Assembly: GCF_035594765.1 (NCBI RefSeq)
Contig: NW_026943821.1
Location: forward strand, 13,051,608-13,115,607
Source of the DNA: Anolis carolinensis
Lineage: Eukaryota
DNA length: 64,000 nucleotides
Direction: 5' to 3'
Shown: positions 1 to 61,910 of the stretch, piece by piece
How positions within the stretch are numbered: the stretch's first letter is position 1
Layout of the letters: each line of letters begins with the position of its first letter
Notes under the pieces: generated by a model
What the model was told of the DNA's origin: nothing
The model's input: only the letters and a program-made list of their open reading frames with translations
The model's database searches: none
Program-made: the position numbers and the translations under genes

Positions 1-9
1 CTGACCTAC

Positions 10-681
10 CTGTCAAGTCGCTTCCTTTTCTTCTCAGGGGACCACCTTGAGACTTCTCTCTTGAAATCTGCCAATTCATCCTTCAGGGCATTTACAAGAC
101 ATGGGAAATCATACATTTCCAAGTGCCATCTTGATATTACAAAAACCCTAGGAGAAGGCTCGCCTGCTTTGGTCAAGTTTTCACAGTAATGATTCCTTAT
201 CTTCTTCAGGATTCCTTCTTCACTGAAATTGGGGTTTTCTCTCTCCGATTCCAAGCTCTTATCCACTTTGGTGCGTACATAAACAAACTTCCTCTTTATT
301 TTCTGGATTGCGTGGACCAGCCTTTGGTCATCTTCAGTGAACCTAATTTCAGAGACAATGATGAAGAAATCATACTTGTTTAAATCTATATTCTTTACAT
401 ATTCCTCACTTTTAAATTCATTTGTTCCAATCCCTGGAAGATCCCAGAGTGTTATGTCTGAATATTCAGGATGCACATAGGCCGTTGGTTCATTTAGGAC
501 CTGTATCACATCTGTCACAGCAGCACCGCCTTCTACATCTGTCTTCATACCCCGCAGGGCATTCACAAGTGACGATTTCCCAGTTCCAGTTTCCCCAATG
601 ACGGCAATGTTAAATGTGACATCTTCAAGTTCCTGTATTGAGGATGGGTGTGAGTTTGTTCCCCCCATGATGATTTTGTGG
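10..681 (-). CDS. IRG (p47 immunity-related GTPase) gene 1, G-domain exon; ATG at 668; gene probably continues beyond the left window edge
   Basis: ORF 6-668 has G1 GETGTGKSS, G3 LWDLPGIG, YDFFII, G4 RTKVD and PRVFVIS. N-terminus MGGTNS fits MGxxxS myristoylation. Acceptor tttttacag| precedes 681; donor GACAG|gtaggt at 10/9 overlaps the ORF stop. Confidence 0.9.
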
Positions 682-6879: not shown

Positions 6880-6891
6880 GAAAGCGAAACC
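6880..6891. promoter_or_regulatory. ISRE/IRF element in duplicated upstream block
   Basis: GAAAGCGAAACC matches GAAANNGAAAC; conserved in the paralogous block at 22503-22514. Confidence 0.6.
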
Positions 6892-7560
6892 TAACTCAGA
6901 TGGCTGAAGTTTCCATTTCTTTTAAATCAGCGGTTTGACCAACAGCAGGAGGTAGGAGAGGGAGGTGGATAAGAAAAAATTGGGCCGCCTCCCAATTCCC
7001 ATTAGAGAATACAATGATGAAGCAGAAAAATAGTTTGCCTGATCTCCGATATACTTCTCCAAACTCCCCAGAGTCTTAGCTCCTTGAGACTCCTCTTGAC
7101 ATTAGCAATTTCCATGAAATCGTGCTGTTTGGTGCCTTTATTTTGTTAATCCCTCTGGGTTTTCCCAAACCTACCTGAACATTGAAAAAATGGAAGATAA
7201 CTTGTTCTTTGTTTCAGACATTATCATTAGTCTAATCAACCCTTTAGAAACCTACATGCTTTACATACGGTAAGAAGTAACACTCCTAAAACATGCTTCA
7301 ACATATAGTCTAATTTGATCCTCATTCCTCATGAAATCCCTATGTTAGGACTAAAGTTGAACTGTACTGCTTATGGCCACAAACAGATCTGGTGAAATGT
7401 TTGCAATCCCCTGCATCTTGTACTCAGTGTTGAACTGGGTGAGGGATACAAATATATCAGACAAATAAATGGACTTGCGTGCAACTCACCTTCCCCATAT
7501 TGCTGAGCAAGGTGAAGAGTTCTGGAGAACCCAAAAGCTCACACACTTCTGTGCTATTAT

Positions 7561-7888: not shown

Positions 7889-9704
7889 TTTAATATTATT
7901 ATATTGCATTATTTGTATTATTATATTATAGCTTGTTTAAAAAGAGCTTTGCAGTTGCAGACATTGCATCTATAGTAGAGTCTCACTTATGCAACATAAA
8001 CGGGCTGGCAAAACACTGGATAAGCAAAAATGTTGGATAATAAGGAGGGATTAAGGAAAAGCCTATTAAACATCAAATTAAGTTATGATTTTACAAATTA
8101 AGCACCAAAACATCATGCTTTACAACAAATTGATAGAAAAAGCAGTTCAGTACACGATAACTGTATTTATGAATTTAGCACCAAAATTTTGCAATTTATT
8201 GAAAAATTGACTACAAAAACATTGACTACTAAAACTGTGTTGGATAATACAGAACCTTGGACAAGCGGAGCTTGGATAAGCGAGACTCTACTGTATATTT
8301 CAATATCTTTTCTGCATCCTTTCATCCTGTTTCTTTTTCTTCATCAGGATCTGACACAATTTTGGTACCATAATTTTTATTAATTTTAAGTTTGTACAAT
8401 ACAGAAATGTAAAACATTTCAAAGTATTCAAAATAAGGGAAAAAGTAAAAGAAAATGACAATAAGAAAGAGACAATAAAATATAAGAAAAATATATAATA
8501 ATGAATAAATTCATCAAAATATATTTGAAACTTATGTTATCTAACACAAAAACTGATACACTATACGTAAACACTGAACTACTAAGTAATTAATCCATTG
8601 TGGGGCTCAGGGCCCTCAATCTTATTAAAATAAATTTCTTTATAATTAAAATAAACTTCTGCAGAAGAATAAAAGCTTGTATAGGTCTCCCATTACAGAT
8701 TTGAAAAAATAACCCTACTAGAAGAGTTAAAGCTCGTAAACATAATCATCTCATTATTCGTCTTTTGACAAAAAAGGCCATAAATTGCTTTGAGATTTTC
8801 ATGAAATCATTAATTGGAGTTTTTTCCCCCTTCAAAATTCATGTTAACCTGCCAACCTGAGATAACTTGGCCACTTTAAGAGTTCATGATTCTATACTTG
8901 TTACTTCAGTTTGCTCCCAGATCTGAGCAAACAGTCTTCTTGTGGCTGTTCAAATGTATTGGAGAAGTAATCCATATTTGTTTTCTAATTCTTTGTCTGT
9001 TATTCCCAATAAATACATCTATGGTGACAAAACAATGTCCAACATTTTAAAAAAAGGAATTAGCATAATTATCCTGGACCAGGCCTTTTCCACTTGCCCA
9101 GAGATGTGTCCCTCACAACTGGAGAATTTGCATATTCATTTATCTCCTAATCTGTGAAAGTTAGAGACTTGTGACTGACCACGTCGAAAGATTTGGCAAT
9201 TTCACATAAACTGCAAGTGTCACCTGCCAGAAAATATTACAGTACATAGGACAAGGTGCTCTTTTGTGCATCCTGCTGTAAAAAAGCAATCAGTCCGCCT
9301 CTTGCTTGATCACTAAATGGCCATGGAGAAGGGGTTGTCTAGGCAGCAGAAAGGTAGTTTGCTTGCCTGGGAAAACTATGGGCAATGAAGTTGATCAATG
9401 CCTCCTTTCACACCAACTCTACAAGCACATAAGCAGATATAATAAAAAAAAATACTGGCAATACAGGGAATCAGTGTGCCACAGTGATTTGAGTGTTGGA
9501 CTACAACTATGGAGATCATGGTTCGAATCCATGTTTGATGATGGAAAACCCACTGGGTGACCCTGGCCATGTGATACACTCTTAACTCCAGTCAATGACT
9601 GGAGGACTTCTATTACTTCTCAAGAGTTACAAATCACAGTAAAGCAAATGACTGAAAGCATATATACATATAGGTTGGCTGGTTTCTTGACAAGAGTTGA
9701 TTTC

Positions 9705-10993
9705 TCATGTTCTGTTAAGAGGTCTATTGATATCATATTCAACATGCTTCAGGGCTTCTTTAGAAACCCTTTCAGCATCTTCAGCCACTTGATCTAGGAA
9801 TTTATAGAGCATTCTGGAAGTGCTTGTAAATGATAAGCCTACATTAGCTAAACTAGTAACCACACTAAGCGGAAAATATTTGTTCCAGAAAACAACAAAT
9901 GTCATAACAATATTGAAACATTTCTTTATTATACTATCTGTGCTGATGTATTCTTCTTGTGATGATTTAATTTGAGCCTTCAACTCTTCTACAGGCTTGT
10001 TTATGTGCCAGGCCAACAAAGCTAATGAGTCACCATCCAATCCAAATTTCTTGTACATGTCAGCCATATATTTCTGCAAAAAACTAGCATTGAAAGCCAC
10101 AGGAAAATCTGGAAGTGGAACAGCATTTATGCATGCAGTCACCAGAGAAACTTTCCATAACTCTCCCTCTAGGAGCTGTTTCTTCTGCTGTATGATATCA
10201 GATGACACATTGGGGAGATTCAAGATGAACTTCAGTTTCTTCAGTATGGGCAGATCTCCTTCAAGCCTCTCTATCAGAAGGTAAAAGTCAAACCTTTCCA
10301 ATTTGCAAGAGGATAGCAGAAAAACCTGGGGGATAAAACTCCCCATGTATACTTGGAAATATCTGTTACAGTCATCCCTAATATTTTGTAGGACATTTGC
10401 TTCATTGAAGGTCCTAGGATAATCCCTTTCCATGTTTGTCAAATCTTCATCCACTTTTGTGCGCACAAAATAAAACTTCTTCTTTTCATTATCAATTATC
10501 TGAGCTAGGTCAATGTGAATGTCCCGGAAGCGCTTTGAGCATAGAATAATGAAGAAGTCGTAACGGTGGAAATTAACCTTCTCAAGGTAATCATTTGATC
10601 GAAATTCTGGAGCTCCTACCCCTGGCAGGTCCCAGAACTTCACATTCGGATCATTCGGACTCTCATAACAGATTGGGTTCGAAGTTGTTGCTGTCACTCC
10701 AACTTGGGCAGCTCCAACATCTCCAGGCTTTAGGCCTCTCATAGCATTGATGAAAGAAGATTTCCCAGCCCCAGTCTCCCCAATGACTGCAATGTGAAGC
10801 TCTGTTTTTTCCCACAATTCCAGGGATCTTTCCAACTCACGAGCTACTTCATAAATAGATACAGCATTAAAAGTTTCACATAATTTCTCAGCTATGTTTC
10901 GGATTAAGTCTTCTTTGGCATTTGGTAAAGAAATTATGGTTTTTAAAACTGATCTCATCTCTTCAAAAAATGATATTTCAGAAAGTGCATTTT
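9705..10993 (-). CDS. IRG gene 2, main coding exon (full-length GKS IRG; ~440 aa with upstream micro-exon)
   Basis: 417-aa ORF with GETGAGKSS, FWDLPGVG, RYDFFII, RTKVD and C-terminal helical region (AVPLP, FGLDGDSL). Acceptor ttttttcttttctag| at 10994/10993; frame is open from acceptor to ATG 10958. Confidence 0.93.
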
Positions 10994-22502: not shown

Positions 22503-22514
22503 GAAAACGAAACC
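22503..22514. promoter_or_regulatory. ISRE/IRF element, paralogous to 6880-6891
   Basis: GAAAACGAAACC in the shared context ATTTAGGAGAAA(A/G)CGAAACCTAACTCA. Confidence 0.6.
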
Positions 22515-23308: not shown

Positions 23309-24886
23309 TCTACATACCTATGTATAAGTCTAAACCTTTTAGTCAAGAAATTAACCTCAAAAACCAGCCTTAATTTATCCACGGGACAATATGAGTACTA
23401 TACTTTAACTTTTTTTAAAAAAAAGGAACCAATCTCTTTAAAAAAAACTAACTGCTTCACCATTCTAGACCTTCTCCTGTCTAACTGGGAAGGAGGTCTA
23501 AAACAGTCAGCTGTTGTCAGTGGGCCAGTTCTTGCAAAGTGATGTCGATGGTGCTAGCAAGGATTTACTTGGAGAAGAGACACAGTAAGGAGACAAAGGT
23601 CTGGTAAGATGGTGCACAGCCATAACAAGTTCATGACTTCCATCTAAATGGAGAAATGCAGTTCTGGGGAAATTAAGAAAAGGAAACAATCGCAGGGAAG
23701 TGGAATTCTGGTATTACAGTATTTAAGAAAATTCAATATGGCAGCAACATCCAAAGGGAAGCAGTAAATGTCAATAAATGGAATACATACGTATATGTGT
23801 AGAACCCCACACCTTTTAAATTCACTTCTGGCAACAAACCCCACAATCTCTTTATCCACTTCTTTCAATAGGAAACCCTTCAATACAAACTCCACCATCT
23901 GTTAACAGAACACAAGCTGCCAATGATATATAGACAGGTGTACCATCATGCATCAGAAACCTTGCCTCTGATGCACACTGAGAAATAACGCATGAATAGA
24001 GTCGATTGTTTCCCCATTTTAGAAAAGGTGTTTGTTGGTGGATCCTTTGCCTACAGGTGCCTATGGATTACTTATGAAAAGGACTATGTGCATTGTGGTA
24101 GTACCCATAGGAACCAGTAGTAACGGGCATCAGAGGCAGAGTATATGACTGTGTGATAAATATTACCTATTCTGATTAGTTTTGATTAAAGAGAAAGTAA
24201 TGTGTTTCTATTTACAAACTGTAAGTATAGAGCTAATATAGAGCTGTGGTCCTTGAAAATGTCACTCATAACTTTCCTAATTCTGAACACTGGGCTGAAA
24301 AGGATAGCGAGGGGAAAGATGCAAAAGAAGAAATTGCATACATTGGTTCTATAGGCAATAGGGATAATTTGGGCTTTGAAGGCTGAAGTAAGTAAAAAAA
24401 AACTTTATTTATATACCGCCCTCTCTCCCCAAATGGACTCAGGGTGGTTTACAAGCATAAAAATAGCAACATGCATTACATAAGTAGCACCATACAAACA
24501 TTATTAAAACAAAATTAAAAACCTATACAACTAGTAAAACAGTGAAGACCATAAGAAACAATCACAACAACCCGGAGGAACAAGAATATATAATCAGATG
24601 GGTTGACATGGTCCGTTATTAGGGATAGATTATCCTTGTACAGCATGTTTCAGGGCCAGGGGTTGGTGGTACACCAGAGAAGATTATTCAAAGACCCGCC
24701 GAAACCACCAGGTTTTCAACTCCTTGCGAATGGAGGACAGAGTAGGGGCTTGACTAATCTCCTTTGGCAGGATATTCCAGAGCCTGGGGGGGGGGGGGGG
24801 CAAGGGAAGAAAGTGGCAATGTATTACTAAAGCCTGAGCCAAAGACATGGGTCTGACCATGTATTACTACCTGAGCCAAAGCACCC

Positions 24887-38510: not shown

Positions 38511-41229
38511 AGTCTTGGACAAAGGCTGGCTGAGTGAATTTGTGAATTAATCAATGGTTTTAATCTGTACATGATGACACCGATGGCTTAAAAAGCTCTC
38601 AAGGTATCCAAAGATTATTTCCTGGGGTGAAAATATACATATTGGTCTAGCAGGGCTTGCCAGATTCCGGTTGTCACATACCTGGAGGCTGATCAGATGG
38701 GCCAGTGCTTTGTCAATAGGTTCGGCCAGGTAAATAGACAAAAGGAATAATCAGGTGGGGTGATCTTGGCTTTCTGAAGGCTGAAACTGCCCCAGATATG
38801 AATGTGACAAGGAACAAAGTGATCATAATTCTCTCTTTTGAGCGGCCTGCTCCGAGGCTCAAAAGGGGAGATCAATGTCTATTGTCCATGCAAGGGATTT
38901 GGTGATGTCCTTTTGTGAGAAGATTTCCAGTCCCAGGAATGCGGATGACTTTCTGCCAGCCAGGTCAAACAGAGGTGGCTCACAGTATTTTCATACATTG
39001 GGGAACACAGAGGGAAAGGGGGACATATGGGGGTACATAGAATACATTCATAAAGTCAGAAATCATATTGCCCACTCCCACCCACCCAAAGGTCCAGGGT
39101 AAATCCATAAAGTTCATAGAAAAATGTCTCTGATTGAGTCCTTTTTGTGGAGGGATTATTCTCCCCTCTTGGGAATGAGTGTAGCTTCCTGGCAGCCAGG
39201 TCACACAAAGGTGTCTTCTTAATATTTCATAATATAACTCACATATGAGGGACAAAAAAGTAAGGGAAACATGCAAGGATACATGGGACACATTCGGAAA
39301 TCATATCCACCCATCCCACCCCCCAGAAAGTCCAGGATAGACCCCAAGTTTCATAGAAAAGCATAAAACCCCAAGAAGGGAGAAACTATCAGTAAATGTC
39401 CATGAAATATGGCCAGACTGGCCAAAGTCCAGTTGAAAAGGTCAATGGGGCAGTGGTGGTAGCCTGAGGAATGAGGGGACCCTTGGATGACCCCCTCTTC
39501 GTGTCCATCCGGTAGGCCGAACTTCACAGGTCGAGGAACAGTGGCAAGGCAGGAACGCAGCAGGAAAGAAGCTTGATTTGACAATCAGCTGTTGTCTCTT
39601 TAAATCTTGCTGCGGTACTAAAGATGGTTTTTCCAGGAGTGTAGAGATTCCAAATGTAAAAGCCAGATAGCAGTTATGCTTAGGGTTATTTCAGAAAGAA
39701 GCGGTGTGAATTTGGGATCAATCCGTTAATGCATGGTTACAGAAATCCAGGGATGTCAGGATGCAAAAAAGATCAGCATTCTCCAAGCTAACCTTTTTCA
39801 CATCTGACTAGAACAAACCGGATAAGGAAGACCATTTGGTTGGGAAGGCTGATTTATGACCTGCTCTGGTTTTCAAACGTAGGAAAGAACAATTGAAGGG
39901 GAGGTGTGAATGGGGAAGAAGAGACGTGAGCGGGGGAGGGAAGAAACAACTTGATATACCGGGGAAAGAGCGGAAGAGGGGCAGTATAAGCTTTGCGGTC
40001 ATCTTGGCAAAGCGGATTCAATAAAGTTTCTATAGCTCCAAGCTGTGTGAGCCTATGTTTGTGTCCTACACCTTCCACGAACTGACAAGGGATCTCTGTA
40101 ACCACAGTTTAAAGGAAAGCATTCCAGCTGGTTGCCTGCAGCTGCCAGGAACTTGAGAAGGAAGGGTAAGCAATGGCGAAAGGTTTTTTATTAGACAGAA
40201 AAGATAGATTCCCCTGCCAGAGTCAAGGAAGGATACAAAATAACTACTATGAGAAAGGAAGGTTAGAATGAAATGATACTTTTATTTGGGATTAGTTACA
40301 TTGTTAGGGATAGGGAGAGAGGCAAAGAAGAAACATAAGCTGCTGTTGGAACACACTTCATTTATTGATTGGTTCAGCAGGGCTTCTTCATTTGATGGGT
40401 GGAACTCCCTGCTGCAGGTCAGATTAGATTGAATGCAGGAAGTCTGTTTTGCCCGACCTCATGGAGATGATCAGCAAAAGCTGAAGACTCCATCTTATTC
40501 TAAAATGCTTGATAGACAAATCTTTTATTCTTCACCCACGATAGAATCAAAGACCAATATAAGCAGAAAAAATAACTCAGATGAGAGTGTTATGGAAATC
40601 CTACATTCTTTTCTAGTTCTGTTTTTATTCCTCTCTATCCCAGTTGAACTGTATATTGTGTTATTATGGGGAGAGAAAATACAGTTATGTGTGAAATTTG
40701 ACATGGGAAAGTGTGGCAATTGGAGGGGGAAATAGGCTTATGGACAACCATGGCTATGTTGTTGTGATTCGGCAGACTATTTGCACAGAGACAACCGTGA
40801 TCTAATGCCAATAGACTGATTGTGTCCTAAAGGTATGACAATGGAGACCAGAATTCAAATATTTACTCAGTCATGGAAACCCACTGAGAGACTTCAGGCA
40901 AGTCACACTCTTTTAGCCTCAAAGGAAGGCGAAGGCAAACCCTTTCTGAACAATCCCTAATTTGCCAAGAAAACCTCATAATAGATTCGTCTTAGGGTCT
41001 CCATAAATCAAAAGTAACTTGAGGGAAAACAACAACAAAAGGTGAAATAGCTAAAATCAATTAAAAGAGGAAGCAGGCAACCATAAATGTATTTCATATA
41101 TGCGGTGCAAATATATCACTTTTAATATTGCCCATTTATAAGTGCAAATTCAGCAAAATTAAATGACAAATGAGAAACATGAAAAGTGAGTCAGAAGAAA
41201 TTCGGAAAGCACCCAACCTACCTGGCCAG

Positions 41230-42391
41230 CAAATGGAGTCATCCACCAATATAACCATAAATGAAGATAAGCTGTGTCCACATTTAATATGCAAGCAAGG
41301 TTGCATAAGGGAGGAAGGCAGTTGGGAACTGTGTGAGGCTGTCAAAGGGGAATGGCCTTTCTTGCTTATTGGCGGTTCCACTACCTGCCTCTCTGATGCA
41401 ACTTTTCCTGTGCTGTTGGGCCTCTCATTAGTGAGGTGGACAGTGGTGTTATCAAGAAATCTGACTCCACAAAATATGAATTATATGGAGTTACATGAAA
41501 CAGTAAATGAGACCCAGTGTGCTGCTCTGTCTTTTTTAAAAACCTATTCCATAGAATCGCCTTTGGGATGTTGCCCAGTTGCAACCAAGAAAATCTCCAT
41601 AATCCTTTTACAGTGGGTCAGGAGACACAGAAAAAGCAATTCAATGAATGAATGTCAGACTGCCTCCTGGTCTCATTGAGAAAGCTCCTGGTCTCATGGC
41701 TAACTCTCTTGCTGCCATTGACACATCTCCGGATTTCATTGACAAGTTTCCTGCTCTCAAAATCTGAGCACTGAGTGAGATTAGTCCAGATTTTATCAAC
41801 GATAGCTGTCAAAATGAAATAAAAGTGCTCTGTATTCTCCACTGCGATATGTCATCCTTTCTGGCAAGAAAGAATTAAAAAACCTCTGCTTTTGCCTTCT
41901 ACCCATCCATATCCTGACTTGGCCTTCTGGAATAGCTGGGACACGGCAAGCTTCCGATCTTACGAAATAGTTGAAATCACACAACAGCAGAATGGCCAAC
42001 AAGCAAGAGCAAGTCATGCCCCTTGCCAGCCTCATGTGGCTCCCAACTGATCTCATTCAAAAGGCCTTTAAAAACCTCTCTCTTGGTTTCTAAGGTCTTG
42101 TGAATGGAGCCATTGACTCTAACATGCATTCCAATTTTGGCTGTGTAATTTAGCCGAAAAAGATGTGCATTAGATTTGAGTAAATATGATGTTTTTCTGT
42201 CTGTGCATGAAATCATAGCACAATAACTGTACAGTGTGAAAAGACCATTGGTATTGGAGCATTAGGCTCTTTGAATTTATGGGGAACAGCAGCACCTCCA
42301 CAGAAGCAGAAGCAAAGTTAACAATTCTGCCTGTTCTTCCTCTTCTCTCCTTTGGCTTGGCTACAGACTCCAGGACTGGGAAGCTGCTTCC
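41230..42391 (-). pseudogene. Possible highly decayed IRG-like pseudogene
   Basis: Acceptor tattgttcag| near 42391 followed by staggered overlapping ORFs over ~1.2 kb (IRG-exon size). HFYFILTAIVDKIWTNL..FESRKLVNEIRRC resembles IRG KFYFVRTKVDEDLTNM..FNEANVLQNIRDDC. No intact P-loop visible. Confidence 0.35.
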
Positions 42392-47923: not shown

Positions 47924-49120
47924 ATGGGTATTGCATTAACAAAATCGTTAGTTAAAGAAGAGCTTCAACGATTCAAGGCTGCCAAGGAAGAAGGGAACAT
48001 TGAAGATGTTAAAGCCAAAATAATGAAGGATATGGAATTATTAAATAACACCACACTTCATATTGCCATTACGGGAGATTCGGGATCTGGTAAATCATCA
48101 CTTGTCAATGCCCTGCGAGAAATGACAGATGAAGAAAAGGACTCAGCACCGACTGGAGAAATCGAAATGACAAAGGATAAACAGTCATATAAGCATCCCA
48201 AGTTTCCTCAAGTTACACTTTGGGACCTGCCTGGAATTGGAACACCTAATTTTAAAGCAGATGAATATCTGAAGCAGGTAAATTTTCGCCAGTATGATTT
48301 TTTCATCATTGCTTCAGGAGAACGATTCACTGAAAATGATGTCAAGCTGGCTTGCGAAATTAAGGAAATGAAGAAGAAGTTCTATTATGTGCGCACAAAA
48401 ATGGATGTAAGCATTAGTAATAACAAAAAGAGGAAAAACTTCAGTGAGGAAAAAACCCTCCAGGAAATCAGGAATTATTGCATCCAAAGATTGAGGGGCA
48501 CAGGAGAACATTCACCAAGGGTTTTCCTAATATCAAGATGGCATTTGAACAACTATGAGTTTCCACTCCTTGTAAAAGCATTGGAGGAGGACCTGGATGC
48601 TCTCAAGAGACATGTTTTAATCATGGCTCTTCCAACTTTTTCAAAAGAAGTCATCAAAAAGAAAGAGAATGCTATGTCAGATCTTATATGGAAACTGTCC
48701 CTTCTGTCTTGTACTGTTGGGGCCATTCCTATCCCAGGCCTCTCTCTTGCTTGTGACATTGGTATCTTGGTGTCAACAATGAGAAAAATATTCAATTGCT
48801 TTGGGCTGGATGCAGAATCCCTTCGTAGGCTTGGAGAACGTGTTGGAAAACCTGTAGATGAATTGAAGTCTGCTAGGAAGAAATTCCAAGGAGTTGATAC
48901 GCTCACCAAAGAATTTGTAATTGACTACTTGCAGAAGTCAGTGGCATGGATAACAGTATCTACAGTGGAGTTGGTTCTAGATTTTGTACCTGTCGTGGGC
49001 TCGGTGGTCGGTGGAGGAGCTTCTTTTGTAACCACGTACTACATGCTGAAGAATTTCCTGAGTGATGCTGTGGAAGATGCACAGAATGTTCTGGCAAAAG
49101 TTTGTGAAAAAAAAGAATGA
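47924..49120 (+). CDS. IRG gene 4 (398 aa, canonical IRGC/IIGP5-like GKS IRG)
   Basis: Acceptor ttttttctctttcag| at 47895, Kozak gccATGG, MGIALT myristoylation-type start, GDSGSGKSS, LWDLPGIGTP, YDFFII, RTKMD, AIPIPGLSLACD, FGLDAESL; AATAAA at 49375. Confidence 0.95.
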   Translation: MGIALTKSLVKEELQRFKAAKEEGNIEDVKAKIMKDMELLNNTTLHIAITGDSGSGKSSLVNALREMTDEEKDSAPTGEIEMTKDKQSYKHPKFPQVTLWDLPGIGTPNFKADEYLKQVNFRQYDFFIIASGERFTENDVKLACEIKEMKKKFYYVRTKMDVSISNNKKRKNFSEEKTLQEIRNYCIQRLRGTGEHSPRVFLISRWHLNNYEFPLLVKALEEDLDALKRHVLIMALPTFSKEVIKKKENAMSDLIWKLSLLSCTVGAIPIPGLSLACDIGILVSTMRKIFNCFGLDAESLRRLGERVGKPVDELKSARKKFQGVDTLTKEFVIDYLQKSVAWITVSTVELVLDFVPVVGSVVGGGASFVTTYYMLKNFLSDAVEDAQNVLAKVCEKKE

Positions 49121-51960: not shown

Positions 51961-52648
51961 TTATCTTAATGAGACCACTCTAGGCTGGCTTGAGGAAAGC
52001 AATAGTGCTCTCCTATTGGCTGAGAACAACCTCCTTCGAATGGGAAGAGGTGGAGAATGACCTTGGAGACCAGCGAAAGGTTCATACTTCTCTAGGACAG
52101 TGGTTCTTAAAATGTGCTCCGTGGAGCCCTTGGAGTTCCTCCTGCTCCTGCTCCAAGGGCGTGCGATGACACTGCCATGCTGGTTCTCTTCTTCCTCTTC
52201 TTTCCTCCTTCTCCTGCTACTTCTTTGAGGTCCTGGTGCTCCCAAGGCTCAGCGTGCAGTGGGGTCCCAAGGGGGGGGCAGCCATGCTCCCAGCAAAGCC
52301 AGGCAGAAGGGCCCTGCACCATAATGCTATGGCCACCGAGGATCACATCCCAGGGCCTTAGAGCCCACCAGTCCATCTTTCTTCTTTCTTTTGCCTTCCT
52401 TCCTGGATTCCTTCCTCTGCTCTCTCTTGCCAGACCAGACACCACCAATGTTGCCAAGGAGAAGTCAATACATGCCTTGCAAAGCCCGGCCTGGATCGCA
52501 AAGCCCCACTCTTCCTCTTCATTCTCCTGGGAGTGGAAGCACCTTCCGTGTTTCCAGAACCCTATTTCCCTCCCACTGCTCGGAGTGCTTTGATTGGGCT
52601 TTTACTGCATGGCAGAAAGGGGTTGGACAGCATAGCCCCTGGGATTGC

Positions 52649-53310: not shown

Positions 53311-54495
53311 TATAATATTAAGATTCCTATCTTAACACTCTCGGTGCATATGTATGCATTTAAATGTTAAGGTGTTACCAACTATGATTGGCACTCAATG
53401 TGTGCATGTATGTCTCTTCAAGCTGCTTGTCAACTAATAGTGACTTGATGAGTTTCACAAGGTTTTCTTAGCAGCTTATGGGTTTTTGGCATGGCCAAGC
53501 TAGTGCTCCTCCTGCCAACCTAGCAGTTTGAAAACATGCAAATGTGAGTAGATCAATAGGTACCGCTCCGGCGGGAAGGTAACGGCGCTCCATGCAGTCA
53601 TGCCGGCCACATGACCTTGGGGGTGTCTACAAACAACACCGGCTCTTCGGCTTAGAAATGGAGATGAACCCCAGAGCCGGTCACGACTGGACTTAACGTC
53701 AGGGGAAAACCTTTACCTTTACTAAGCTAGTGCTCTTGTACTGGCCTAAGTGCTGTTGCTATTCTTTTCCCCTTCAGCATACAATGCAAGAAACAAGAAA
53801 ACCTTTTGAAACCAGAAAGCAAGGAAGTTCATCACTAAAAAGCACCGTTCATCACTAAAAGTTGGGTTTGTTTACCCCACAAGCAAGACAGGCTGTCTTT
53901 TTAAAAAAGTAAAGACAACTGATCATGTCAAACAGAACTTTTCAAACATTTCATGTTGGTGATGCACTTTTTAGATATGCATCATTTTGCAACACAGTAA
54001 TTCAGTTTTAATAGCAAATTGGAGGTTAAACCAACCCCTTATAGGAGATACAGGCACATACATAAATTGCAATACTGAAATGTATGGGCACAGCATGTGT
54101 TATAAAAATGTTTTCTTTATATTTTAAAAATATATGATTGATAAGATAATAACACACATTTCCAAGATTTCTATCATTTTTTGTTATGTTTGTGCGACAC
54201 ATTTACACACCACTCAGATGTGAGCCAGTGAATCAAACTGCAAGAGAAGAGATTCCACCTAAAACATTAGGGAAAAAACTTGTAACCATACAGAGCTGTT
54301 CAACTGTGGGACCTATTATTCAGAAGGTTTAGACTCTCCTTCTTTGGGGGTCTTTTAATAGAAGTTAAATTGATGTCTTTTGGGAATGATTTCAACTTGC
54401 AGTGGATTAGACGAGATGGCTTTGCTGTATTTTCTGACTTTATTATCCTGTGATTCTGACTCAAGAAACTCTAGTTCCCTTTCTGAGCACTGAGT

Positions 54496-55419
54496 TTATT
54501 CGATCTCCAAATATTTACTTGCACGGCTAAATGTATGATCTTTATTCCCACGGAGGAAGCGTGCAGTGCTGGCCCATAGCCCTGAGGTCCTGATCCGGTA
54601 GTGGATGCTACCATCTCTTACATTATAGATATTGATGATATTTTGCCCATTCCCAGAAGCAAAAGTCACCACCTGCCCACCACAATCCACAACCATGTGG
54701 GCATTGTCTTGGATGCAGAATGGCTCCTTGGCAAACTCCTCTATAGCAAAATCAAGGCAGCCCCCAAGTTCAGGGGAAAGGGCCCCCCAGGACTGCAATT
54801 TCCCTCTCACCCTCCGCATATTGAAGATGCTCAACGGTTCCTGACGAACTGAGAGTCTTGCGAGGTACATCTCCGGTGTCAGCTCCCGGATACTGTGCTG
54901 GATCTCATTGTATAAGAGATACACTGAAATCTCACACTCTCCATTGCCAGAGAGAAATTCTATCGGCGTCCCGGCACACTGGATAACCATCCGAGCATTT
55001 TGCTGCACCAACGGGGGTTCCTTGTCAAAGATGTCAATGGCGACGTCGAAACAAGCCTTGAGAAGAATGTTTACCCCACTCAATTGATCGCGATGCCTCA
55101 AGAGATTCCCCACCGTCAGGGGTTCAAAGGAGGGCAGCAGGGTGGCCACGAAGAACAGGGCATCCTTGAGGACTTTGATGACACCAGGAGACCACCACCG
55201 TTGCCTGGTCGCCACAGACAACCCCTGCCCTCTGCTCATGGGAGAATGGTCTTCCTGGCCCACAGTAAGCCAAATAACAAATAGGAGGAGGAAAGAAAGC
55301 AACACCACAAATGTCACTACCATTAAAAATTTCCATAGGATTTTTTTCATGTGAGCAGCAAAGAAGGGGAGCATTGCATCAAGGCCCCACTGGATGCCAT
55401 TATGCAGCCAAGCTGCCAT
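54496..55419 (-). CDS. Uncharacterised 307-aa membrane protein with two tandem ~80-aa repeat domains
   Basis: Uninterrupted 924-bp ORF in non-repetitive DNA; acceptor ttttatttctttcag| 4 nt before ATG; hydrophobic helix aa ~27-53; internal repeat aa 99-178 vs 194-277 conserved at protein level. Confidence 0.85.
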   Translation of the reverse strand: MAAWLHNGIQWGLDAMLPFFAAHMKKILWKFLMVVTFVVLLSFLLLFVIWLTVGQEDHSPMSRGQGLSVATRQRWWSPGVIKVLKDALFFVATLLPSFEPLTVGNLLRHRDQLSGVNILLKACFDVAIDIFDKEPPLVQQNARMVIQCAGTPIEFLSGNGECEISVYLLYNEIQHSIRELTPEMYLARLSVRQEPLSIFNMRRVRGKLQSWGALSPELGGCLDFAIEEFAKEPFCIQDNAHMVVDCGGQVVTFASGNGQNIINIYNVRDGSIHYRIRTSGLWASTARFLRGNKDHTFSRASKYLEIE

Positions 55420-55611
55420 ATTCCTGAAAGAAATAAAATGTCATCAGTCATGTGGTAGATATCGTAAAGCTTTAATTCTCAGGTTGTACTTCTGTCTCAT
55501 CGTTTATTCTTGGAAACTAAGCTAGTGGTCATTACTGTTGGAAATACAACAATGGTTAGCACTGAAGAGTGAAGTATGCTGCACAGTGGAGCTGTAGTCA
55601 TAGGGTTAGAT

Positions 55612-55740
55612 CAGTGGTTCTCAACCTGTGGGTCCCCAGATGTTTTGGCCTTCAACTCCCAGAAATTGTAAGAGCTGGTAAACTGGCTGGGAATTTTTGT
55701 AGGTCAAAACACCTGGGAACCCACAGGTTGAGAACCACTG
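55612..55740. mobile_element. hAT MITE
   Basis: TIR CAGTGGTTCTCAACCT / AGGTTGAGAACCACTG; 8-bp TSD GGTTAGAT. Confidence 0.88.
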
Positions 55741-55759
55741 GGTTAGATAGTTCAAATGA

Positions 55760-56217
55760 GGCCGGGCTGTGGCGCAGGCTGTTGAGCAGCTGCAATAAAT
55801 CACTCTGACCATGAGGTCATGGGTCCGAGGCCAGCCCGTGGCGGGATGAGCACCCGTCAATAAAAAATAAAAAATAGCCCCTGCTCGTTGCTGACCTAGC
55901 AACCCGAAAGATAGTTGCATCTATCAAGTAGGAGATAAGGTACCACTTATAGAAAGTGGGGAGGCAAATTTAACTAATTTACGACGTTGGAATGAGGAAG
56001 TGCGGTCAGAGTGGATTATGAAGCAGCTGCTCCCCCCTGTGGCCAGAATCGAACATCCCCTCAGGAAAGGTTAAATTGCCTCTGCGTCTGTCTGTCTCTG
56101 TCTCGGTTCTATGTATATGGGCATTGAATGTTTGCCCTGTGTGTGTATAAGGTGATCCGCCCTGAGTCCCCTTCGGGGTGAGAAGGGCGGAATATAAATA
56201 CTGTAAATAAATAAATA
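55760..56217 (+). mobile_element. Anolis SINE2-like element (tRNA head, L2-type tail)
   Basis: Head GGCCGGGCTGTGGCGCAG; L2-like 3' stem-loop and (TAAA)n tail. Confidence 0.75.
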
Positions 56218-57575
56218 AACTCCCAGAAATCCTAACAGCTGGTAAACTGGCTGGGAATTTTTGTAAGTCAAAACACCTGGGGACCCACAGGTTGAGAATC
56301 ACTGGGTTAGATAGTTCAAATGACTAGAACCATCATCCCTCTATCTCTATTTAACCTAACCCCAGTGTGATTTCCAACCTGCCCTACCACATTCACTGGG
56401 ATTAGGGAAACAAGAAGCTTGCAAAAATGAAAACCTATGAACCAAAACATGCAATTTTATTAACTACTCAAAGAAACTAAAGGTCCTCCAGTACAAATTT
56501 ACTGTCAGTTTCTGCCGGACACTGCAGCAAATACTATTTCAGCCTACATTAATACAACTCTAGTTTCCAAGTCAGGAGTAATGATTGCCACATTGTATTC
56601 GAGCTTCATTGAAACTCTGTGTTCAGTTCTAGGTAAAGGTAAACATTTTCCCCTGACATTAAGTCTAGTCGTGTCTGACTCTGGGGGTTGGTGATCATCA
56701 CCACTTCTAAGCCAAAGAGCCGGCGTTATCCATAGACACCTCCAAGGTCATGTAGCTGGCATAACTGCATGGAGCGCCGTTACCTTACTGCCAGAGTGGA
56801 ACCTAGTGATCTACTCACATTTACATGTTTTCAAATTGCTAGATTGGCAGAAGCTGGGGCTAATAGCAGGAGCTCACCCTGCTCCCCGGATTCAAACCAC
56901 TGACCTCTCGGTCAGCAATCTCATCTGTTTAACCCGCTTTGCCACCGGGGGCTCAGTTCTAAGCACCTCATTTTTTAAAAAAGTATATAGACAATTGGGG
57001 TGTGTAATTCAGGTAAACCCCGTGTAATTTTCAATGTCCAATTTTCAGCTGTCTGAATTCAGGAGAGCAAAAGGCCATTTTTCAATCTGGCTGTTGAAAG
57101 ATCTGTTTTGGCTTCGGAAAGATACAATCCCTTGGTGGCAATGGGGGAAACTTCCCATACTCCCCTTTCCATCATTTTTAAGGCTATCGGGACGAAAATG
57201 GCCACAACATGGAGGAGACATTTACCACTGCAAGCCCGCCAAGTTTCAGAATGTTTGGGTCATCCACTGATTTTTTAGGAAATTCTTAAAAGTTTCTAGA
57301 AGTAAGGTCTCCTTTAAAAAAAAAAACCAAAAAGGTATTCCCCAGAATTTTTTCAGCAGCAGGGCGTCATTCCTGCCAACTATCATAAAGATCCACACAC
57401 CACACGATTTATGGGAAATTTTCAAAATTTTATTATTATATATTTCTAGTTATTTACATTTTATATGTGGGGAGAGGGTAGTTCAGGATTCTTGAGTGAG
57501 AGAAGTAGTACACGCAGAGAAGTCAGGTGAACTAAGGCAAGAGTATACACAAGCCATAAGATAGGCGAGGGGAAT

Positions 57576-58449
57576 TGTCACACTCAAGGCAGCAGAGCAC
57601 CAAGAACCATACACGGAGGCCAATAAACTATCTAATATCTTTATTAAGGAAATATATAACAATGATAAAAGCAAGTAGAAAATATAGTCCAGAAGCAGAC
57701 CTTTCAAATAAGGTCAAATATAGTCCAGAAATAGTTTGTCCAATAAATGATATTAGAGTCCAAAGATAAAATCCAATAAACCGGAACACACACTATTGCC
57801 ACTATTGCCAAACAATAGTGTGGGGAATTGTCCAGGGTCTTTCAAGGTCCAAGGTAAAATCCACAACAAGGCTGGAACCAAAACTTGATTCTAGGAACAA
57901 GGTCCGTGACTATGAACAAGGCAAGGCAATTCTTGAATACTTGAATAAGCAAGGCAAGGAAACTGGATTTGCGGACTTTGCGAAGTCCACACAAGGCTGG
58001 AACACGATTTCACTCCTGAAGCTGCTCTGTTGTCTCCGCACGGAATCAACCGTGCCAGGCACCTTTAACTGGGTCTCGTTTTCCCGCCAAACAGGTGCCC
58101 AGCGTTCTCTTTCCCTAGAGAACAAGAAACGAAACCCAACTGTCCAGATGTGAGACTCCCTGGATTTTCCCAGGGGAAACATGGCTAATCAGTGTCTTGT
58201 TTGGCTGCAATTCTTAAGCTCCTGCGAACCCGCTCTTTCATTCCCCTGTCTGCAGCAAAGGACTGTCTCCTAGCGAAGGGAGGTGAGAGCTGCTCAAGGT
58301 CTGTGTTAATTGGTTTTTGGGCAAGAACATCAACATCAGGCATCTGGAAGGATTCCGGCTGTTGTTGATCCGGAGAAAACCCCATGTTTTCATCCTCATC
58401 TGCCACAGGGACACTAGGAGCGGGACTACAAGACCCATGAGGCATCACA
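57576..58449 (-). mobile_element. Solo LTR
   Basis: TGTCACA...ATCACA termini with 5-bp TSD GGAAT. Confidence 0.82.
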
Positions 58450-58532
58450 GGAATGAAGGAGAAACCCACTTGGGTGAGTCACAAAGACCCCACCTACACT
58501 GCCACAGAATGCAGTTTCAGAATGCCCTTTAA

Positions 58533-59904
58533 TCTATATATATAAAAGAGTGATGGAATCCCGGCGTCCAAGAAAACAACAAAACTAAAGGCCCCCCAAC
58601 CTCGAAATTTGACAACACAACCCATCATCCACGCCTCTAGGTTGATACAACAAAAAGAAAAGAAAAATCAAGTCCTAATTAGAGGGAGAGGAATAATTGT
58701 CTTTATCCAATTGCTGCCAGTTAGAAGGCTAAGCTCTGCCACTTGGTCTCCTAGCAACTCACTCAGCCCAGGGGACAGGCAGAGTTAGGCCTCACTTAGG
58801 CCTCTTCCACAGATTATCTCATTTGCACTGGATTATATGGCAGTGTAGACTCGAAGCCCTTCCACACAGCTATATAACCCATTTATAATCTTATATTATC
58901 TGCTTTGCACTGGATTATCTTGACTCCACACTGCCATATAAAATGCACTTCAGTGTGCATTTTATACAGCTGTGAAGAAGGGGCCTCATATAATCCAGTT
59001 CTAAGCAGAAAATATAAGATTATCAATATACAGTAGCGTCTCACTTATCCAACATAAACAGGCCGGCAGAATGTTGGATAAGTGAATATGTTGGATAATA
59101 AGAAGGGATTCAGGAAAAGCCGATTAAACATCAAATTAGGTAATCATTATACAAATTAAGCACTAAAACATCATGTTATACAACAAATTTGACAGAAAAA
59201 GTAGTTCCATGCGCAGTAATGCTATGTAGTAATTACAGTAGAGTCTCACTTATCCAACACTGGCTTATCCAACGTTTTGGATTATCCAAAGCATTTTTGT
59301 AGTCAATGTTTTCAATACATCCTGATATTTTGGTGCCAAATTCATAAATACAGTAATTACTACATAGCATTACTGCGTATTGAACTACTTTTTTGCCAAA
59401 TTTGTTGTTTAACATGATGTTTTGGTGCTTCATTTGTAAAATCATAACCTAATTTGATGTTTAATAGGCTTTTCCTTAATGCCTTCTTATTATCCAACAT
59501 ATTCGCTTATCCAACATTCTGCCGGCCCATTTATGTTGGATAAGTGAGACTCTACTGTACTCTATTTACAAATTTACCACTGAAATATCACAATGAATTT
59601 AAAACACTGACTACAAAAACATTGATTACGAAAAGGCAGACTGCATTGGACAATCATGAACATTGTATAAGCGAATGTTGGATAAGCGAGATTCTACTTT
59701 AATATGAAATAATTTCTGGGATAGAATAATGTAAAACAATATAATCTCTAAAACCAGGACAGTAAATAAAAAGCGACACTCTGAAAGCAGGGAAATTGGA
59801 AATTCCACAAAGGAAACAATCAGGGCCAGCTAACACCTCCCAAGAAAGGATTCTTCCAGAAAGGAAGCTGAGAAGGGAGAAGGAAGCACTGTGTATTACC
59901 AAAG

Positions 59905-59951
<47 letters not shown>

Positions 59952-60865
59952 GTGTTGCGGTCAACCGTGAAAATGAATACAATCTGGTTCCAAGTATTCA
60001 AAAACACTAAAATCAGAATATATAAAAATTAATATGGTATAATAAAACACAACAATACAATCTCTAAAATCAGAACACTAAATAAAGAATAACACTCTGA
60101 AAACAGGGGAATTCCACACAGGAAACAATCAGGGCCAGCTAACACCTCCCAACAAAGTCTTCCCATTATCAAAGTCTGGCAAATCCTCTGTTTTCTCAGG
60201 GCCACAGACAGTAGAAGCACATAAAATATTGCAAAGAACACCACTCTGAAAACAAGGGAATTCCAGACAGGAAACAATCAGGGCCAGCTAACATCTCCCA
60301 ACAAAAAATTCACTCGGGGAGGAAACAGCCAGGCTTTAAAGCTGCAAGGCCATTACATCCTAATCATTTTCCCTAATTGCAGCATTCATACTAGCCTCCA
60401 ACAGACAAAAAAAAACCCATCAGAAATATTGTATATTCACAACCTTTAGGAAATAATATCCCCTGATGGCGCAGCGTGTTAAAGCGCTGAGCTGCTGAAG
60501 TTCTGGACCGAAAGGCCGCAGGTTTGAATTGGGGGAGTGGAGAGAGCCCCCACTGTTAGCCCCAGCTTCTGCCAACCCAGAAGTTCAAAAACATGCAAAT
60601 GTGAGTGCATCAATAGGTACTGCTCTGGTGGGAAGGTAACGCCACTCCATGCAGTCATCCCACATGACCTTGGAGGAGTCTACGGACAACGCCGGCTCTT
60701 CAGCTTAGAAATGGAGATGAGCACCAACCCCGAGAGTCAGACATGATTGGACTTAATGTCAGGGGAAAACCTTTACCCTTTACCTTAACTACCACCAATT
60801 CCTCAATACTTTATTTCCCATACCACCAGACTTCGCCACAGCAACGCGTGGCCGGGCATAGCTAG
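58533..60865 (+). mobile_element. Non-autonomous Helitron carrying MITE, Penelope-like and SINE fragments
   Basis: 5' TC after A; 3' hairpin GCCACAGCAACGCGTGGC then CTAG; no TSD. Confidence 0.78.
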
Positions 60866-61335
60866 TCTATATCTATAAAAGAGTGATGGCATCACGGCGA
60901 CCCACAAAACAACAAAACTACAGACCCCCCAACGTCGAAATTTGACGACACAACCCATCATCCACGCCTCTAGGTTGATACAACAAAAATAAAATAAAAA
61001 TAAAATCCTAATTAGAGAGAGAGAGGAATAATTGCTTTTATCCAATTGCTGCCAGTTAGAAGGCTAAGCTCCTCCAACTTGGTCTCCTAGCAACCCAATA
61101 AAAAATAATAAAAAACACTAAAAATAATTAAAAACACTAAAAAATTAATAAAATACCATACTAACAAAAATAACTAAAAATTATACAAGAAAATAATAAA
61201 ATATAATAAATAAAAAGATAACTTACAATAAAATTAATTAAAAAATACAAATAACGTCAAATAAAAATTACACAACAATTTTTAACCAATACCACCACCA
61301 CTTTGCCACAGCAACGCGTGGCCGGGCACAGCTAG
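60866..61335 (+). mobile_element. Second, shorter Helitron copy, head-to-tail with the first
   Basis: Starts TC immediately after CTAG; shares the first ~230 bp and the 3' hairpin+CTAG; followed by T. Confidence 0.78.
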
Positions 61336-61619
61336 TTGCATTATAAAGTAGTGTAGACTGCATTCTGAAAGGGCATTGCATGGCAGTATAGATACTCTCA
61401 GCTCCAGAAAAGCCCATCACTATAGCAACAAATAATATTCCCTATCCAAAGGTGGGGTGGATTCAGTAACTTCTCAAACTCTGGCAATGATTTACTAGAA
61501 TGAGCTAAGAGATGCCCAAACATTTAGATAGAGGCTACAAATAAATATTGGGATCCTGGGGAAAAAAATATAAAATTAAACATTTATCCATCTCATATCC
61601 CTTTGAGTTTCCCAGAACT

Positions 61620-61910
61620 TACATATCGAGTGCAACCTCTTTCTTTTGTCTTCTCTGAAGAAAAATGAAACCACCGGACTCTTTTTTGAGCTTTCGATTT
61701 CTTTGAAACCACGTGCCCCATCCTTTACTGCACTAAAACCCAATTTGTCTATACAAATTATCATCCTGGTTCAGAACTGAAAGCGAACGTACTGCATTTG
61801 GCTACTAGTCAGTCCGATGTAGAAGAATCTCGTTGCTTTGTTTCCTGCAGCAGGACTTTCTTTTGAATCTATCTAAGCAACTTTCTTTGGGGCCTTGGAC
61901 TCACCCCTGC
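61620..61910 (-). promoter_or_regulatory. Probable IRF-responsive promoter/first exon(s) of the 307-aa gene
   Basis: GAAATCGAAAGC on minus (61701-61690), GAAAAATGAAACC (61660-61672), GAAAGCGAAC (~61779); minus-strand donors gtaagt (~61622) and gtgagt (~61904); CpG-enriched 61.6-62.5 kb. Confidence 0.45.

Follow-up and report, generated by a model that had tools for sequence, protein, structure and literature searches.

The Locus and Its Gene

The window analyzed here is the whole of a 64,000-nucleotide stretch of Anolis carolinensis DNA (contig NW_026943821.1, positions 13,051,608 to 13,115,607). It contains four IIGP (IRG) open reading frames (ORFs): those at 6–668 and 9705–10958 are on the minus strand, and those at 27936–29210 and 47924–49120 are on the plus strand. 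Tail-to-tail with the last of these lies the gene with which this report is concerned, whose intact ORF of 307 amino acids runs from ATG to TAA on the minus strand. An acceptor AG with its polypyrimidine tract sits immediately 5′ of this ATG, and the start of the exon is therefore placed at 55423. At the other end, an ATTAAA signal at 54012–54007 agrees with the 3′ end of the contigs discussed below; the 3′ boundary of this exon is approximate. The preliminary description of the locus had proposed an intact 307-residue ORF with a strong splice acceptor, a coding sequence held essentially in one exon, and a tail-to-tail arrangement with the fourth IRG gene. All of these features were borne out, with exon 2 holding the entire coding sequence (Table 1).

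Table 1. Features of the gene, by position in the window.
Feature	Position	Strand	Basis or remark
CDS, 307 aa + stop	54496..55419	-	ORF read and orthologues
Exon 2: 4 nt of 5′ UTR, entire CDS, ~0.5 kb of 3′ UTR	53990..55423	-	contigs of small runs and ATTAAA
Intron 1, ~6.2 kb, many high-copy repeats	55424..61622	-	donor and acceptor bounds
Exon 1, putative, non-coding	61623..61660	-	homology to exon 1 of the Tiliqua and Lerista NCBI models; 5′ end approximate
ISRE-like element GAAATCGAAAGC	61690..61701	-	~70 nt upstream of the exon-1 donor; GAAA halves invariant
CACGTG (E-box-like)	61710..61715	-	inside the conserved TGGGTCAC(G/A)TGG block of the five-lizard alignment
Putative signal-anchor/TM helix, aa 27-53	55261..55341	-	hydropathy 3.1; modelled as helix
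Repeat 1 of the module, aa 99-193	54841..55125	-	alignment, model, single-repeat HMM
Repeat 2 of the module, aa 194-292	54544..54840	-	alignment, model, single-repeat HMM

A check for spliced transcripts gave a favorable result. The stretch is contained in 18 runs from seven studies of one organism; the runs are presumed to be RNA, and their tissues and treatments are coded. Contigs from three of them (X2, X5 and X10, small runs whose sizes are 30, 50 and 123 million letters) span 54025–55423 and end at the acceptor, and depth in the same runs is near zero in the bin 55400–55599 and over the first 200 nucleotides of the intron. One X5 contig aligns to exactly 55423 and then continues for 19 letters that have no match in the genome: this is the pattern expected of a spliced mRNA. 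Runs of 30–123 million letters are too small to assemble a single-copy lizard locus from DNA, and an RNA origin is thus favored. A skink contig (L004) was rejected as evidence of splicing: it follows the genome without a break past the acceptor and is hence unspliced or DNA. The ORF is a real, functional gene covered by transcript-like contigs from runs that are presumed to be RNA.

Intron 1 itself is crowded with interspersed repeats of very high copy number. At 55600–56400 and 58400–59600, the summed contig depth in four runs ranged from thousands to millions, and the contigs contained many joints between copies.

Orthologues and Selection

The closest database match to the protein was the Anolis carolinensis “uncharacterized protein LOC103282400” (98% identity over 247 amino acids). 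This public model (P0001) begins at Met61 and consequently lacks the N-terminus and the transmembrane (TM) helix. Orthologues with 46–63% identity were found in 12 squamate and turtle species, all of them unnamed or “uncharacterized” (e.g., Elgaria LOC134408152, Zootoca LOC118086966 and Gopherus LOC115643925); full-length examples come from Elgaria, Rhineura, Zootoca, Hemicordylus, Tiliqua, Lerista, three geckos and two turtles. LOC103282400 and these reptile orthologues are the same gene as the ORF in the window, and none of the models carries a name, a domain or a function. In an exact look-up, both the window protein and the Thamnophis protein were absent from the records.

Selection on the gene was gauged with the Nei-Gojobori method (NG86), which yielded dN/dS values of 0.22–0.37 among lizards. 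The ratio was ~0.2 in the two domains vs. ~0.5 in the N-terminal part of the protein, and an unsaturated pair of skinks (dS 0.24) had an omega of 0.27. These values indicate purifying selection, albeit on a protein that evolves fairly fast; at 0.2–0.3, the ratio is not near 1, and the gene is functional.

Could the ORF nonetheless have arisen by chance, as a pseudogene or from a transposon? The region is rich in repeats, and a LINE is present elsewhere in the window. Against this reading stand the full-length syntenic orthologues, the dN/dS of ~0.2–0.3, the missing transposon domain and the transcript-like contigs, and we regard its probability as negligible. A transposon-encoded protein in particular was rejected: Pfam returned no transposase, reverse-transcriptase or integrase match, the sequence occurs as a single copy in the window, and its orthologues are syntenic.

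Exon 1 and the Promoter

Between the ORF and the end of the window, the pattern GAAANNGAAA has a single match, the ISRE-like element of Table 1. It lies on the gene's own strand and is accompanied by two imperfect neighbors, and the earlier report of several IRF motifs about 6 kb upstream was thus sound. The strict ISRE pattern, GAAANNGAAAC, is not found from the ORF to the window end; the element that is present ends in G, not C. The donor of exon 1 (GTAAGT, 61622–61617) conforms to the consensus, and the exon is located 6.2 kb upstream of the coding exon.

In an alignment of this region from Anolis, Tiliqua, Lerista, Zootoca and Elgaria, the five lizards do not differ in the E-box, in either GAAA half of the ISRE or in the donor TGTAAGT, and in each of them the ISRE precedes the exon-1 donor by 70–90 nucleotides in the gene's own orientation. 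The retention of the ISRE in this place across five lizard families constitutes good indirect evidence for interferon control. In Tiliqua, the element takes the canonical form GAAAACGAAACT. In Tiliqua and Lerista, the exon found between the ISRE and the donor codes for MAERAALRL, with which the NCBI Tiliqua protein begins; the other three lizards (Anolis, Zootoca, Elgaria) have lost the exon-1 ATG, and their translation begins in exon 2. From the sequence, we infer that exon 1 of Anolis is joined to exon 2. In the turtle Gopherus, a canonical GAAACTGAAACT is situated 1.2 kb upstream of the coding exon, with flanks that align poorly.

An ISRE/IRF element in the proximal promoter, one feature looked for in assigning a gene to the interferon-stimulated class, is present here. 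On good grounds, then, we infer that the gene is interferon-stimulated, and we refer to it as a candidate ISG.

The strict ISRE pattern has five matches in the window vs. one expected. Matches at 6880–6919, 8329–8339, 22503–22513 and 23677–23687 are found a few kilobases upstream of IRG ORFs; these clusters are probably the promoters of the IRG ORFs at 6–668 (minus strand) and 27936–29210 (plus strand).

Linkage to IRG Genes

The gene is built like the IRGs of the window, with an ISRE followed by a short 5′ exon, an intron of ~5–6 kb and one exon for all of the coding sequence. It thus resembles the IRG/IIGP GTPases (PF05049) in chromosomal cluster and in gene architecture, but its product has neither a GTPase domain nor any sequence similarity to them.

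The association is not peculiar to Anolis. IIGP genes flank the Zootoca orthologue on both sides, the upstream one being divergently oriented; in Lerista, an IIGP gene is positioned 8 kb upstream of the orthologue on the opposite strand; and the Elgaria orthologue falls inside the range of an IIGP gene. In Tiliqua, just 487 bp lie between the start codon of the orthologue and that of a divergent IIGP model, and a canonical ISRE is contained in this interval (L008, 9514–10001); judging from its sequence, the interval may be a bidirectional interferon promoter. The linkage to IRGs is therefore kept in four further lizard genera. At the one turtle orthologue locus examined, that of Gopherus, no IIGP gene was found within 10 kb. 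Nor was an IIGP gene called within 10 kb of the alligator paralogue, whose neighbor is a carboxylesterase, or of a Chrysemys gene with 20 repeats (see below). The second Anolis member of the family, LOC100558663 (L009), lies 4 kb from a TRIM gene of the RING/B-box/PRY type and has no strict ISRE within 10 kb upstream.

These data invite a more prosaic account, according to which the gene encodes an ordinary lineage-specific membrane protein that has no link to interferon; its proximity to the IRGs would be passive synteny, and the ISRE would serve the neighboring IRG only. Conserved synteny can persist in the slowly rearranging genomes of reptiles without functional coupling, and the Gopherus orthologue and the examined paralogue loci, with no IRG neighbors within 10 kb, as well as the Anolis paralogue with no strict ISRE over the same upstream distance, are what this account would lead one to expect. 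It does not sit well, however, with an ISRE placed 70–90 nucleotides upstream of the gene's own exon-1 donor, and in the gene's own orientation, in five lizards, nor with a gene architecture that is the same as that of the window IRGs. We consider it decidedly unlikely.

Other sequences occupy the spaces between these genes. A LINE remnant (30800–34819, plus strand) with endonuclease/exonuclease/phosphatase and reverse-transcriptase ORFs separates the third and fourth IRG genes, and two plus-strand ORFs between IRG genes and the studied gene, at 52114–52593 (159 amino acids) and 41170–41679 (169 amino acids), had no Pfam match.

A Repeated Module and Its Family

The C-terminal portion of the protein had been described as a tandem duplication. 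Indeed, the two copies (nucleotides 55125–54886 and 54840–54589) align with 40% identity and 57% positives (E = 3e-19), and the consensus that had been drawn from them, EPL(T/S)xxNxxRxRxxL...SGNGxxxIx(V/I)Y, is correct on the alignment. The proposed length of ~80 amino acids was too short: the full repeat has ~95–99 residues, since it continues past the four strands into a third helix.

A profile search of 1.84 billion representative proteins matched 65 clusters. The matches whose source name was looked up all came from squamates, turtles or crocodilians, save for two WD40 proteins, a metagenomic Ig-repeat protein and a protein from a hemichordate; birds, mammals, amphibians and fish were absent from these names. 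Repeats were counted with a single-repeat HMM, for which 64 repeats were combined into a profile with 98 positions. It located 20 repeats in a Chrysemys protein (1,934 amino acids), 13 in one from Pelodiscus and 10 in one from Platysternon.

Two of these turtle records merit comment. The Chrysemys picta gene (L006, 10001–15805) is an uninterrupted 5.8-kb ORF composed of 20 tandem copies of the module; its model begins mid-repeat, and the 5′ end is therefore probably incomplete. The Platysternon megacephalum protein with 10 repeats (TFJ95814.1; P0017) bears the source name “molybdenum cofactor biosynthesis protein MoeA”. It contains no MoeA domain, and the name is evidently an annotation error.

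The hemichordate protein, from Ptychodera flava (P0075, 795 amino acids), is the sole non-reptile relative that was found. Its full-sequence E-value with the HMM was 1.7e-16 when scaled to an assumed database of one million sequences, and ~six copies of the module could be discerned by eye and with relaxed scoring; it has no signal peptide and no TM helix. A word search with this protein returned only itself, and a profile of the most divergent reptile subfamily returned reptile proteins only.

In a tree of the individual repeats, to which no support values are attached, repeats in first position cluster together across the three main reptile subfamilies, as do those in second position. From this grouping by position, the two-repeat form appears to be older than the split of the three subfamilies. 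The turtle arrays represent separate expansions.

Our literature search found no paper on the gene or on reptile IRG clusters. A poly(I:C) study in crocodile (PMC5702629) lists induced transcripts without names, none of which could be linked to the module family. As far as we have searched, the family, its repeat structure, its taxonomic range, the ISRE promoter and the linkage to IRGs are undescribed in the literature covered; the gene models are public but unnamed.

Predicted Fold of the Module

Residues 95–300 were modelled with AlphaFold2 from an alignment of 32 sequences (pLDDT 93.6, pTM 0.82). In the model, each repeat opens with a short strand, which is followed by two long helices and a short one, then by an antiparallel meander of four strands, and a last helix closes it. 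The two repeats are rigidly packed against one another and make up the C-terminal 200 residues of the protein.

Comparisons to known families were unproductive, and the earlier statement that the protein belongs to no named family was upheld: nothing credible emerged from Pfam, from PDB sequences or from fold searches. Pfam gave no credible match, and the PDB gave none either by sequence or by profile. A fold search with the whole-protein model was dominated by its long N-terminal helix and was thus repeated with the two-domain model; Foldseek then returned nothing better than E = 0.04 from the PDB and BFVD, and the ESM-Atlas offered nothing usable, whether searched by shape or by features. 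The best structural matches, all with E of at least 0.04, were the REDD1/DDIT4 core (PDB 3lq9), a THUMP domain (2dir) and phage tail-terminator/neck proteins (3fz2, 9oab). Like the module, these have helices packed on a small antiparallel sheet, and 74–85 residues were aligned. As modelled, then, the module has no recognizable known fold, although a missing match is no proof of a new one.

One resemblance called for closer scrutiny. The segment F-x-S-G-x-G-x-N-x-I-x-V-Y-D of repeat 2 is reminiscent of a WD40 blade (PF00400), and the two WD40 proteins had surfaced in the whole-protein profile search with E-values of 2e-6 and 9e-4. We rejected the WD40 assignment at the level of the repeat, as there is no WD40 match in Pfam and the single-repeat HMM gives those two proteins no score, and also at the level of the propeller: the model is an alpha/beta sandwich, and no WD40 protein was among the listed matches of the fold search.

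Predicted Membrane Helix and Topology

The protein has one strongly hydrophobic segment, at residues 27–53. The best 19-residue window (31–49) has a Kyte-Doolittle value of 3.1, and hydropathy thus corroborates the single TM-like helix of the preliminary description. In Anolis, this helix is flanked by three K/R residues on its N-terminal side vs. one on its C-terminal side, where E56 and D57 make the charge net negative. The same bias, with more K/R on the N flank than on the C flank, was present in 14 of 14 orthologues. By the positive-inside rule, it places the N-terminus in the cytosol and the domains on the exoplasmic side. Residues 54–77, which follow the helix, are weakly conserved, modelled as disordered and stalk-like.

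Cysteines and glycosylation sequons also bear on the topology. Six cysteines are invariant among the orthologues. In a second subfamily, which occurs in snakes, lizards (Anolis LOC100558663 among them) and alligators, four cysteines follow the TM helix in six of eight proteins, and these align to helix-2 and strand-1 positions of each repeat. The same paralogue group has 28 N-x-S/T sequons after the TM helix, compared to ~10 expected, with an NLT and an NGT kept in position; LOC100558663, which has a single coding exon, contains seven sequons, and the protein of the window contains none. Taken together, the flank charges, the invariant cysteines and the sequons of the paralogues favor a prediction of lumenal or extracellular domains stabilized by disulfides. 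In silico, the protein has the uncleaved N-terminal hydrophobic helix with a more positive N flank that defines a type II membrane protein. On this sequence evidence, we hold it likely that the protein is of type II, with its domains outside the cytosol.

Two other arrangements were weighed. In one, the hydrophobic segment would be a cleaved signal peptide of unusual length, and the two-domain protein would be secreted. The small residues at −3 and −1 (T-V-G before Q55) could suit signal peptidase, and the linker that follows the helix is disordered in the model. However, the putative cleavage site is not conserved among the orthologues, and the hydrophobic core comprises ~23–27 residues preceded by ~26 more. 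A core of that length with such an N-terminal stretch is what one expects of a signal anchor rather than of a signal that is cleaved. Secretion by this route is accordingly very improbable.

In the other arrangement, the domains would be cytosolic, owing to an N-terminus on the outer side or to a peripheral or hairpin anchor, and the protein would act as a membrane-bound partner, receptor or regulator of the IRG GTPases. The conserved IRG neighborhood in lizards speaks in its favor, as do a promoter region that may be shared with a divergent IRG and the lack of a glycosylation sequon in the Anolis protein. In addition, signal peptide and TM helix are both missing from a third reptile subfamily and from the hemichordate protein, and some such family members have C-terminal amphipathic helices; this implies that the module can fold in the cytosol, and it seems to work there too, which weakens the lumenal reading. 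Nevertheless, the positive-inside rule opposes cytosolic domains in every orthologue, and the even number of invariant cysteines and the sequons of the paralogue group do so as well. We judge this arrangement to be unlikely.

The topology matters for the proposal, made in the preliminary description, that the protein is a membrane anchor or partner for the IRGs. If the domains are lumenal, as the charges, the six invariant cysteines and the paralogue sequons indicate, only ~26–30 residues would reside in the cytosol, where IRGs act, and this argues against the anchor role. A complex prediction for the protein with the neighboring IRG (47924–49117) had a score of 0.00, which counts neither way. 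Overall, that description was right about an undescribed family, about the clustering with IRGs and about the upstream IRF motifs; the anchor role is the part that we would abandon.

A Possible Role for the Protein

The explanation that we prefer, with slightly better than even confidence, is that this two-exon gene of the IRG cluster is interferon-stimulated and encodes a type II single-pass membrane protein. After interferon signaling, ISGF3/IRF factors would bind to the ISRE, and the gene would be turned on together with the neighboring IRGs. The helix would serve as a signal anchor, leaving ~26–30 residues in the cytosol, while the disordered stalk (residues 54–77) and the two modules, probably stabilized by disulfides, would be exposed at the cell surface or in the lumen of a secretory or endosomal compartment. 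The module sequence shows no visible catalytic signature. The polar positions that are conserved, namely E-P where helix 2 ends, Q-x-N-A and the S-G-x-G turn, resemble a binding surface rather than a catalytic one, and the conserved face that bears the EP..VQ.NA motif and the SGxG turn is thus most likely where a ligand would bind. The protein could then serve in binding or restriction on the non-cytosolic side of a membrane, in the manner of other interferon-induced type II membrane proteins. It would be co-regulated with the IRGs without contacting them directly, and it would offer them no docking site.

BST2/tetherin is an interferon-induced type II membrane protein. Its plan, in which a short N-terminal tail in the cytosol leads through a signal anchor and a stalk to an ectodomain, with expression from an ISRE promoter, is also the one predicted here. 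The two have no similarity in sequence or fold: the ectodomain of the present protein consists of two alpha/beta modules instead of a coiled coil, and the protein lacks a GPI signal. What they share is thus design only.

A bolder proposal can be framed, which we offer as a long shot. The ~97-residue module would be a previously unseen fold common to reptiles and a hemichordate, and the gene would supply a membrane-resident part of a reptilian IRG system. Expressed along with an IRG from a shared ISRE promoter, the protein would mark or recognize the membranes on which IRGs act, in a role like that of the regulators bound to membranes in the IRG system of mammals.

Almost nothing is known of cell-autonomous immunity in reptiles, and this gene is a candidate interferon effector for which no counterpart was detected in birds or mammals. 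Its module is recognized by no database, yet it recurs in up to 20 tandem copies in turtles and is also present in a hemichordate. The gene offers a testable entry to the organization of the IRG system outside mammals and may furnish the catalogue with a new domain family. Should its role prove to be one of ordinary binding, these results would still be a useful annotation for a set of “uncharacterized LOC” genes.

Allelic Variation

There is an excess of amino-acid replacements between haplotypes of the Anolis gene that is worth following, in counts too small for a test. Over residues 61–307, six replacements (T151P, R202L, R203W, A213V, G219E and R290G) set the protein of the window apart from the public Anolis one, and three of them fall within residues 202–219. 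A second haplotype in run X1 corresponds to the public protein (CDS 54764–54969): the X1 contigs show the first five replacements, T151P to G219E, together with one synonymous change, at Y167.
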